Origin: Piromyces finnis finn
Lineage: Eukaryota > Fungi > Neocallimastigomycota
Assembly (NCBI GenBank): GCA_002104945.1
Contig: MCFH01000007.1
Coordinates: forward strand, 62,001-126,000
DNA: 64,000 bases
Reading direction: 5' to 3'
Below the pieces are notes generated by a model, which was given only the letters and a program-made list of their open reading frames with translations, did no database searches and had not been told where the DNA came from. The position numbers and the translations under genes were made by a program. Positions 19,777 to 39,472 of the stretch are shown here, one piece after another (the first letter of the stretch is position 1; every line of letters starts with the position of its first letter).

Positions 19777-20431
19777 TTTTATTTTTAAAAAAGAATATAA
19801 TAAAACTTTAATATTTCAAAATTTTTCTTATAATTTATTTTATTTTTTTCAATTTAATTGAAATTAATTTTCAAAAATATAATAAAATTTAATAGATAAA
19901 AAAAGAAAAATTAAAAAAAAAAAAAACTAACAATTAAAGTTCCTACTCTAAATTTCTTTTTATAACTAAATGTTACATTAAATATAAATTTTGTATTAAT
20001 CAGAGAAAAAAAATGTTGATATGATAAATTTGTTTTATTGGTTAAAAATAAAAACTTCTTTTTTTTGTTTTTTTATCTTTTAATATTAATCTACTATAAT
20101 TTAATAAAATAATATTCTTTTTTTTATTAAAAATAATAATAACGAAATATATTTTAGATATATAAAAAGGATAAAAAAAGTTTTTTTTTCTCTAACACTT
20201 CAATTAAAATATTAAAACCTATAGCTTTTTAATAATTTTTTTTTTTTTTTTTATTTCAATTTTGAATTTATTTTATGGGATTTTTTAAATTTTTATGGAA
20301 TAATTAATTATAAATAAAAGCTTAACAAAAATATAATAAATAAATACTTTTAAAAAAATAATTTTTTCATTTTATTAAATTCTTATTCTAATAAAAATGA
20401 AAAAATAAAATGAATAAAATCATTATTTTAT

Positions 20432-23400
20432 TTAAATCTTTAATTTTTCTAATTCTTTAAGTAATTCAGATTCACGACCAAGTTTTGTAAGCTAGAATAA
20501 GAATAAATGAGAAAATATTTATATATCATTAGTTAAAAACTTTATAAAATTATTATTTAAAAATTATACTTACTTGAGCTTCATCTAAAACAGCACCGCT
20601 TGCCTTTTTGGCCTTTAATGTTTCTATTTCACGTAATTTCTTTTGAACTTGTCTAAGTTTCTTAGCTGGATCTACTGTGGCTGGTTCTGGTGGTGGGGTA
20701 GATGGATTTGAAGCAGCAGCCTTAGCTTCAGCCTTCTTTCTATTTTTTCTTTGATTCTTCTTTTGACTTTTTGTCAATTCTTTTTTTTCTATTTATTAAT
20801 AATAATTATTACTATTTATTAATAAAAATAAATATTTTTTAGAAAAGTATATTTCAATATTGATATACCTTCTGGAGGAACATAACCTGGAATAGCAGCA
20901 GTCTTTTTAGCAGAAATTATTTCTGTTGATCCAGTCTTAACATCTTTGTGTAAAATATTTGATGGAGTGTTTCTGCCACGAGCACCTGGTGGTCTGTAGA
21001 CACCAACTGGCTTTTTAACAACTATATGTGGTTTATTTTTTTAAATATATATATTTAATTAATTTATTATATACAAAATATTTGATTCCATATTATAACA
21101 TTACCTTTAACTTCAGTTTCTGGACCACCAATGAATGGTTCTGGAGCTGGAGCAAGATTAGTCTTTTCAATAAAGTTGTCAACAGCAATTGGCTTCCATT
21201 GAACCTTTTAAATTTTTAATACTTTAATATTTATATTTATTTTGATAAAATATAATAATTATAAAAAAACTTACTTGATATAATTCATTAATTTCTTCTT
21301 GGAATACCTTGACACCAGTGTAATGCCAAATCTTATAACCATTATCAACACGAAGTCTTGGAGTTAAAGTAGCAGTAATAATATGTTGACCATCTGGACA
21401 CCATTCACAATATGAAGCATTTGAAGCTTGAGCTGATCCAATTTTTTTTAAAGTTTTTAAGTCCCAGAAATCCTTATTTATTTTTTATACATTATTCAAA
21501 AATAAAACTTTAATATAACCATAACTTAAAAATGAATGTAATAATAAAAATATTAATATATATCAAAATTTATTTAATACCATTTCACCAGCAAGATTAC
21601 CAAAACCAGCAAGGCAAACTAGTATGTATCAGTTAAGATTAATATTTATTTTTATACACATATTTTTATATTTATTAAGTATGTAAAATATTAAAATTAA
21701 AAGGATATCTCTTCCATGGCAATTGAATTTAACAAAGTTTCTGTGATTTCTTGGGAATTCAAAAACTGGCTTAGCACGATAATCAAACAAAATAGCTCTT
21801 GATGGCATTAAACCATAAATAACAATAAATTCTCTAGAATTTGGACTCCATGCAACATCATGAATTGGAGCCCCAGTTTCTGTTATTTTAATTTTTAATT
21901 AACAAAATCAATATTTATGATGAGTTAATTGATAATTGGAAAGATTTGTTATTATTATAAACTTGATAATACTTATCTATAATAAAACTTACCTAATTCA
22001 ACTCTGCAATCGTAATTACCAGCAATGGCTAAGAAATATAAAGCAGTTTCACCATAGTAAGTGGTACCAGAAGTATCAACATCAGTGTGGGTTAAAACTA
22101 ATAAATTAGTACCTACAGAATAATATTTTTTAAAAAATATATATAAAAAAGGTATATTAATATCATTAATATAATACATATTAAATCAAATATTTATATA
22201 ATCATAAAATATATAAAAGCAATATGGATTTAAAATATAAATTCACTAGTAAAAATTTACCAAGATCATTCCAATACATATCAATATTATCTACTCTAAA
22301 GAAACTTTTGGCTGAAACTGGACTCTTATAATTGTTATAACTATAAATCTTAACAGAGGCTGGGTTACCCTTAATTTCTGGGACAAAAGTAGCAACAAAT
22401 GGACTTTTTCCTGGAGAAATAGAAAATGTAGTCATACCCTTTAACTTAAATTTATTAAGTAAACCTGGAATAATTTATGTATTTATATTAATAACTTATC
22501 AATATAAATATTTTTATCAACTAAGTAAATATAAAAAAATTATTTTTTCATTACTTTTTTCACTAATATTAAAGAATTCAATTTGATCATTAACAAGACG
22601 AGCAACAACGGATTCATCTTCAGTCCATTGAACTTCCCAATTTTTTGGATTTTTTTGGGTAAATTCCATCTTAGCTTCCCCAGAAAGAATATCATAAATA
22701 ATTAAATTTTTGTGAGTTGGTTTATTAGGATCACTAACTTTAACTATTTTCAAGTAGTTTGATATAAAAATAAAATTATCAAAAATAAATTTATTAATAT
22801 AAAAACAACTTTATTATATTAATTAATAATAATTAATATATACCATATTTTTCATAGGTTGAAATATATGTATTTCTTGGAGAAAAAGCAATATCCATAA
22901 TTCCTCTTTTTGTAACTTCCATAATAATTTTGTTATCTTCAGTGTTTAAAACGTAAACACTATTTTTCAAAAGCATTTGAATACAAAAATTATAAATATA
23001 TTTCAATTAAAATTTTATTAAATAATTTTTATATACTTATTTAAATATTTCAAATGTATCCAAATGTATTATATTACCCATCAGCTGTGGCCCAAGCGAG
23101 ATATTGGCCATTCTTTGAATACTTAAAAACTCTAACATTTTTGTCATCTCTATTATATAATAAAATACATTAAAATCAAAACATATAACTATAATTATAA
23201 TACTTATTTTCAATATAAAATTGAAAATGTAAAATATTCAATGATAAAATATATATATAAATACTAACTTATTAAAATTTGTTGAAGTTTCATATTTTTT
23301 TGGAGTACAACTGGTATCATAGACTTTTAATCCAGTAGCACTACGAACTTAATTATATATATAAAATATAAAGATAAAGATATAAAATAAATTATAGGTT

Positions 23401-23937
23401 ATTACTAATTTTTTTTTTTTATAAAAATTAAAGAGGATAAATTGAAAAACAAAAAAAAAAAAAAAAAAGGTTTTTTTTTAGTGTTATGAATAATATAAAT
23501 ATTCCTATTTAAAAAAAATATTAATAGATTAATAGCAATTTAAATTTTGAATTTTATACATCATTTAATACATTCATTAATTTATTATTTTAAGTTTGTT
23601 AGAAAATTAAATTGATAATATAAAAAATATTTTAAATGTAAATATAACTGGATTTAGATGTAATACTGATTTTGATTTTTCACAATACTTTTGTATAATT
23701 TTTAAATTTGTTGTAATAATAATCATTTATAATACTTATTGATGTAACTTTAAATTACTTAAAAATTAATAGAAATTAAATTAATACGCTTTATTAAAGA
23801 AATGTTTAATTATTATATTGTTATAACTTGGATTCCTTTAATTAAGAATTAAGAATTGCAAGATTAATGTATTATAATTCCTCTCATTAATAATGAAAAA
23901 ATTAATTACCAGTAAATTGAGGGATATTTCCTGGCAT
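20432..23937 (-). CDS. EIF2A: Translation initiation factor eIF2A (WD40 beta-propeller)
   Basis: Start MPGNIPQFTVRSATG; hallmark motifs TDVDTSGTTYYGETALY, GAPIHDVAWSP, CLAGFGNLAGEM, TATLTPRLRVDNGYKIW and YRPPGARG. One intron is AT-AC. Confidence 0.95.
21622..21708 (-). other. U12-type (minor spliceosome) AT-AC intron, 87 nt
   Basis: 5' site ATATCCTTT; branch-like TCTTAAC followed by 10 nt to a terminal AC. Removal restores ...NCHGR-V-VCLAGFG... in frame. Confidence 0.85.
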
Positions 23938-25135
23938 ATTTATCTACAATAAATAATTACAAACATATATATATTAATATAAATTGTTTAAATAAGAAAA
24001 AAAATAATTTAATATCTATATATAATTCTATATTCTTAAAACAATGCTTAATCAATATATAATAATTTCAAATTATTTTTTTACAAAAACTTTTATAATA
24101 TATACTTTTATATAATTTCATGTTTATTGATTTATAAATAAAAAAAATAGCATTTGAAAATATTATTCTGATAAATATCTTTAGATACCAAACATTACCT
24201 GTTAAAAGATCTTCAAATTATATAATAATAACAAAATTCTTTTAATCTTTTAATACAAAATAATTATTTAATCTTTAATTATTATTTTTGATCATAGTAG
24301 TGGTTATTCCATACAAACGAAATTTTATTGGTTGGTATTTGTTATAAATTATTAATTAAGTATTATTCATTTACATTCAAATACATTAATGTACTAGAAA
24401 CCATAAAATCTATAAAAAAATTTAACAGAATTATAAAATTTAAAAAATTAATGATTGTTGTTATTAAATTGTTCATTATATTTACTTTCTAATATACATT
24501 TTATAATTTTTTGCACCTTTGAAAAAATTAGTAATTATATATATTAATTAATATATAGCATTTATTTTTACACATATCTAGTATTAATATTATATTTTTA
24601 TATTAAACAAGCATTTTTCTCTAAAAAAAAAAAAATAATTTTACTATATTAATAAAATAATGAAAAAAAATGTTTACCTTAAAATTAAATTGAATTATAT
24701 TAAGAAAATAATGTTACACAAGTATTGAAAATTAAATTTCTATTAAATTATAAATAATGTATTATTTTAAAAAAAAAATAAAATAAAAAAAGCATATATA
24801 TATACTCAAAAATTATAAGGTCTTGATTATTCTTCTAAATAAAAGTAATGTTTATAATAATATAATGTTTATTATATTTTTCATTTTATGAAATTGAAGT
24901 TAACAACACAATTATATTTTTTTATCCTATAATAAAATAAAAAAAAATTTAAAATTTAGATTTGCATATGATTGGTTAAAAATAATTCTTTTTTAAAAAT
25001 AATTCTTTTTTTTTTTTAAATTTGAATATTAATTATATTTAACTGAATTATAGAATAAAAAGAATTTATTTTAATCTTTAATTTCTTTTTAAAAATAATT
25101 TAAAATTTTTAAATAATTATTATAACAATATAAAG

Positions 25136-33175: not shown

Positions 33176-39472
<6,297 letters not shown>

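Follow-up and report, generated by a model that had tools for sequence, protein, structure and literature searches.

The eIF2A gene and its eighth intron

The window, which is the whole stretch of 64,000 nucleotides of Piromyces finnis DNA that was analyzed, is very AT-rich eukaryotic DNA with a GC content of 18-20% overall and of 12-27% per 2 kb. On its minus strand, the coding region of eIF2A (20432..23937) was assembled as a gene model of 14 exons, amounting to 1746 nt that run from ATG to TAA without an internal stop and encode 581 amino acids. Two of the exons gave Pfam matches to PF08662 with E values of 3.7e-16 and 6.9e-25, exon 8 covering positions 60-113 and exon 10 positions 128-193 of the family. 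Exon 9, with the split codon included, contributes 14 residues that supply exactly positions 114-127 of PF08662, and Pfam coverage is thereby contiguous. The deduced protein matches structures that are named eIF2A, from human (8dys_A) and from Schizosaccharomyces pombe (3wj9_A). When the 91%-identical protein of a relative (L001) was used as query, 2742 homologues were obtained at E ≤ 1e-20 and, among the 120 matches listed, all of the functionally named ones are eIF2A.

Twelve of the 13 introns of the gene are of the GT-AG type with lengths of 70-562 nt, and intron 8 is the sole non-GT-AG intron. Intron 8 (21622..21708, minus strand), as defined by the sequence and by a transcript joint, is 87 nt long and lies in phase 1 between exon 8 (21709..21879, minus strand; 171 nt), which ends in ...NCHGR and the first nucleotide of the following codon, and exon 9 (21581..21621, minus strand), a micro-exon of 41 nt encoding (V)VCLAGFGNLAGEM. 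On the minus strand, exon 8 ends with ...CAT GGA AGA G at 21709, the intron opens with ATATCCTTTT and closes with ...AATCTTAACTGATACATAC, and exon 9 opens with TA GTT TGC CTT GCT GGT TTT GGT at 21621; the letters and the coordinates 21708..21622 that had been given in a preliminary description of this DNA were reproduced exactly. The peptide across the spliced junction aligns without gaps to human eIF2A (8dys_A, residues 335-370) and to S. pombe eIF2A (3wj9_A).

The 5' splice site ATATCCTTT (21700..21708, minus strand) agrees at 9 of 9 positions with the consensus of U12-type AT-AC introns, and the pattern [A/G]TATCCTT is found directly at the exon boundary, where gag is followed by ATATCCTTT at 21708. 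A branch-site motif, TCTTAAC, occupies positions 21632..21638 of the minus strand, with A 21633 as the likely branch residue at 12 nt from the 3' junction. This is the textbook distance for U12-type introns, in which 10-15 nt are usual. The branch box AATCTTAAC contains the exact CTTAAC core and agrees with TCCTTAAC at 6 of 8 positions, having a T at the second position, where a G-U pair with a U12 snRNA of usual sequence is still possible. Between the branch box and the 3' end lie the 10 nt TGATACATAC, and the intron ends in the terminal AC without a pyrimidine tract. Within the last 40 nt, CTTAAC is present in intron 8 only, the 12 other eIF2A introns being devoid even of CTTAA[CT] in that segment, and the chance of encountering CTTAAC there is about 0.4%, as calculated from intron composition.

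By itself, the octamer ATATCCTT at the start of intron 8 is not significant in such an AT-rich window, for which 9 matches were counted versus 6.7 expected, a number of 9 being reached by 22 of 100 shuffled sequences. Intron 8 stands above chance because several features combine, namely the fit of frame and residues to eIF2A, the CTTAAC box, an exact transcript junction and the presence of orthologous introns. Eight ATATCCTT sites exist in the window besides that of intron 8 and GTATCCTT does not occur anywhere in it. Six of these eight sites were rejected as U12 donors because the open frame upstream of them is shorter than 30 codons and the GC content is low. The sites at 35879 and 35477 (minus strand) do have open frames but, as judged by eye, resemble the antisense of a plus-strand gene of coiled-coil type and are not exon ends. 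The long minus-strand open frames in 35000-36100, in which both sites lie, likewise have the look of an antisense strand to this Lys/Glu-rich gene and are not introns. A search of the whole window with Rfam at the gathering threshold yielded no snRNA and no other match.

Transcripts and public gene models

Sequencing runs were compared with the window by sampled words. Run X1 contained 99% of these words and probably represents the source DNA, and four runs of the same organism contained about 35%, as would be expected for exons alone. Among the contigs, one of 1777 nt (run X3, study P3) and one of 1735 nt (run X4, study P4) omit exactly positions 21622-21708; both runs were classed as RNA by guess, and contigs such as these give no measure of retention levels, minor isoforms or strand. 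The joint 21621->21709 is reported in X3 and X4 as skipping 87 nt, with ends that read GT..AT in plus-strand orientation and AT..AC in that of the gene. It leaves no room to slide, the bases that flank it being different, and the ambiguity of the joint is 0 in both contigs. Removal of intron 8 from RNA at its exact boundaries is therefore found in two independent studies. Exon 8 is represented by contig pieces 21709-21879 in X3 and X4, and exon 9 by the joints 21621/21709 and 21471/21580 in the transcript contigs.

Ten further joints are present in both contigs and an eleventh, corresponding to intron 13, in X3 only; all of them read CT..AC, that is GT-AG on the gene strand, and the joints agree with the introns of the gene model if reported cut offsets are allowed for. 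In total, 12 of the 13 eIF2A junctions are listed or implied by the transcript contigs. Introns 1 and 12 lie in repeats that were skipped; the pieces on either side imply intron 12. None of these joints occurs in the contigs of DNA run X1 over 20400-24000. A metatranscriptome contig from a close relative (L001), with 87% nucleotide identity and coding for a full-length protein that is 91% identical, has the same junction peptide, as has the protein P0001 of a relative.

The public P. finnis protein P0002 (NCBI/JGI), annotated as an eIF2A-domain-containing protein, is identical to our 14-exon model over the exons that both share, which identifies the DNA as that of P. finnis. At the junction of intron 8 it reads ...NCHGR-DILLILIFYILNKYKNM-FCLAGFG, with ATATCCTT translated as D-I-L and 16 spurious residues inserted, and a GT..AG segment of 39 nt (21619..21657, minus strand), which is in frame, is removed instead of intron 8. 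It had been predicted that programs restricted to GT-AG introns would mis-model this gene, and the prediction was borne out, because P0002 reads into intron 8 and takes out this 39-nt piece; errors at this very junction are also found in four Glomeromycota models. The statement that no GT donor is available is accurate for the junction proper, where there is none, but not for the segment as a whole, since the in-frame GT..AG pair (21657..21619) lies inside it and is used by P0002, though not by the transcripts. Another GT-AG alternative, at TTT/GTTAAA with a TAG acceptor, was discarded because it breaks the frame and would remove the conserved VKFNCHGR.

When 120 homologues were aligned, the junction proved gap-free in 115 and irregular only in P0002 and the four Glomeromycota models. 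The models of Paraglomus brasilianum (P0026) and of one assembly of Rhizophagus irregularis (P0074) have read-throughs opening with H-I-L and Y-I-L, respectively, which are ATATCCTT translated, and those of R. clarus (P0088) and Gigaspora rosea (P0094) have suffered deletions of the flanking strand at the U12 junction. An annotation error thus recurs at one and the same junction in Paraglomus, R. irregularis, R. clarus and Gigaspora, and the public P. finnis model, in which the 16-residue insertion sits in a propeller strand, can be corrected. Further errors were noted in P0002: exons 1-3 are missing, 55 amino acids being replaced by MLLKNS, five residues (VVKKP) and 15 residues are dropped at introns 11 and 12, and intron 13 is read through. 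The transcript contigs favour the 14-exon model over P0002.

The intron position in other fungi

Comparison of eIF2A orthologues, which had been suggested in the preliminary description, showed that distant fungi have AT-AC introns at this codon and in this phase. In eight further genes or lineages, an AT-AC intron that opens with ATATCCTT interrupts the same site, 1 nt past the Arg codon of ...QGR/HGR. The eight are a P. finnis paralogue (P0004; L069, 84 nt), the Neocallimastix lanati counterpart of this paralogue (L074), Basidiobolus meristosporus (L070, 75 nt), Paraphysoderma sedebokerense of the Blastocladiomycota (L075), R. irregularis (L067, 98 nt), G. rosea (L073, 100 nt), P. brasilianum (L068, 187 nt) and soil contigs closest to Glomus (L009-L012, 89 nt), the 3' boundaries of the relatives having been placed by protein homology and matching, in addition, the annotated proteins of R. 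irregularis, Basidiobolus, the P. finnis paralogue and its N. lanati counterpart. All nine of the orthologous or paralogous introns read open with the same 8 nt, and their interiors vary widely, with lengths of 75-187 nt. When compared to the eIF2A introns of B. meristosporus, R. irregularis, G. rosea, P. brasilianum and P. sedebokerense, intron 8 is identical in position, first 8 nt and AT-AC ends, whereas the lengths differ. In the Glomeromycota (L067, L073, L010 and L068), the best CTTAA[CT] box is located 21-33 nt from the AC end placed by homology, which exceeds the usual 10-15 nt, versus 11-12 nt in P. finnis and Basidiobolus.

The paralogue belongs to a second, longer eIF2A of the Neocallimastigomycota with 726-748 amino acids and about 51% identity (P0004, P0008, P0003, P0006). 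Its AT-AC intron at the same codon is located at L069:2156-2239 in P. finnis (MCFH01000028.1) and is present in L074 of N. lanati, and in the metatranscriptome contigs L002-L006 the intron of the paralogue has been spliced out.

At the loci read from Phycomyces blakesleeanus, Podila epigama, Rhizophlyctis rosea and Hyaloraphidium curvatum, there is no intron at this position and coding is continuous. Phycomyces keeps minor splicing. Among 66 metagenome loci, an intron at this position was found in Glomeromycota contigs only. An animal-like eIF2A from a lake metagenome (L054:650-920) contains a GT-AG intron that lies 5 nt downstream of the U12 position, after ...QGTIL and in phase 0, which is a different site.

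The U12-type intron of eIF2A is ancient in fungi because the same codon and phase are used in Neocallimastigomycota, Basidiobolus, Blastocladiomycota and Glomeromycota. Judging from these sequences, the simplest history would be that of a single U12 intron that dates from the base of the fungi or close to it, was kept through the duplication in Neocallimastigomycota and was lost precisely several times. As such, it adds a marker intron for the base of the fungi, and its losses, that of Phycomyces included, fit the patchy loss of minor introns that has been published.

Splicing of intron 8 and alternative explanations

The preliminary description had put forward a U12-type AT-AC intron in eIF2A, and this identification holds for every sequence feature considered and is supported by transcript contigs from two studies. 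Considering the motifs, the exact transcript junction and the conserved position, intron 8 of P. finnis eIF2A is very probably a canonical AT-AC intron that depends on U12, that is on the minor spliceosome. Based on the established U12 pathway and on published work (Larue & Roy 2023), we infer the participation of the minor snRNPs: the U11/U12 di-snRNP would engage the branch motif TCTTAAC jointly with the 5' site ATATCCTTT, U4atac/U6atac.U5 would next take the place of U11 and carry out catalysis, and the 5' site would be attacked by the branch A that precedes the terminal AC by 12 nt. Exons 8 and 9 would thus be joined to encode ...NCHGR-VVCLAGFGNL..., a conserved beta-propeller strand of eIF2A.

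Catalogued U12-type AT-AC introns (intronIC/IAOD; Larue & Roy 2023, with more than 3000 eukaryotes including P. finnis) share with intron 8 the ATATCCTTT 5' site and the CTTAAC box at 12 nt from the terminal AC, as well as phase 1, the lack of a pyrimidine tract and a position that is conserved across distant lineages. There is no mechanistic difference, and the branch box of intron 8 departs only by a single T in place of C. Minor introns are most often in phase 1, less often in phase 2 and least often in phase 0, and the same study had already reported minor introns and minor snRNAs for P. finnis, no minor introns for Dikarya, and 205 and 249 of them for Rhizophagus and Basidiobolus, respectively (Larue & Roy 2023, PMC10639083). 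Its statement on the snRNAs agrees with the inference, made in the preliminary description, that the organism keeps U11, U12, U4atac and U6atac. Because minor splicing in P. finnis had been published, intron 8 does not constitute a new phenomenon, and the surprise implied in the preliminary description was too high for a feature already known from Neocallimastigomycetes (Larue & Roy 2023). The intron is a well-documented new example of what has been published for this organism and leaves the understanding of splicing unchanged. A text search of the literature and of supplements, some of them short or possibly incomplete so that the result says little about vertebrates, found neither an eIF2A U12 intron named individually nor eIF2A listed as a minor-intron gene.

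AT-AC termini alone do not prove dependence on U12, as a few AT-AC introns are of the U2 type, and intron 8 might be excised by the major spliceosome. In AT-AC introns of the U2 type, the 5' site is U1-like (ATAAGT-like) and the TCCTTAAC box is lacking. Excision by the major spliceosome is very improbable for intron 8, whose 5' site is a full U12 match followed by a CTTAAC box close to the 3' end, and whose ATATCCTT start is invariant in nine related introns with lengths as different as 75-187 nt. It is harder still to credit that the public model is right, at least for some transcripts, and that the segment begins with 51 coding bases (…GR-DILLILIFYILNKYKNM-F…), the 39-nt intron (21657..21619) alone being removed. 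Although the path of P0002 is in frame and makes use of GT-AG, its joint is present in no transcript contig, the AT-AC joint being present in two; 115 of 120 homologues have nothing that corresponds to the 16 extra residues, the other introns of the gene are, at 70-562 nt, much longer than 39 nt, and read-through of the same type is seen in the mis-modelled proteins of Paraglomus and Rhizophagus.

A different question is why a U12-dependent intron is kept in eIF2A. It might act as a control device by which slow minor splicing throttles eIF2A output; such regulation by inefficient U12 splicing is a published hypothesis (PMC4615840), and no fewer than four fungal phyla, as well as both paralogues of the Neocallimastigomycota, have kept the intron at this site. 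Yet four fungal lineages have lost the intron precisely and kept the gene, which argues mildly against a necessary role, only the spliced form and no retention isoform is seen in the contigs, which are a weak test in this respect, and the survey of fungal and other genomes considers that most retention of minor introns is probably due to neutral processes and reports no cell-cycle-linked regulation of minor splicing in fungi (Larue & Roy 2023, PMC10639083). We regard a throttle as unlikely, and intron 8 has most likely been retained from an ancestor without serving any special regulation. Also unlikely is the combined proposal that the intron is older than the fungi, so that a minor or converted intron of animals, plants or Amoebozoa would occupy the same position, and that it was kept in both Neocallimastigomycota paralogues as slow splicing tunes the dosage of eIF2A; if this were true, the intron would be no relic but a point of control that has been conserved.

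A Glomeromycota eIF2A from soil (L010) is without an intron at the site matching that downstream of exon 9. In P. finnis, exon 9 (21581-21621, minus strand) is bordered by a U12 intron upstream and by a U2 intron downstream.
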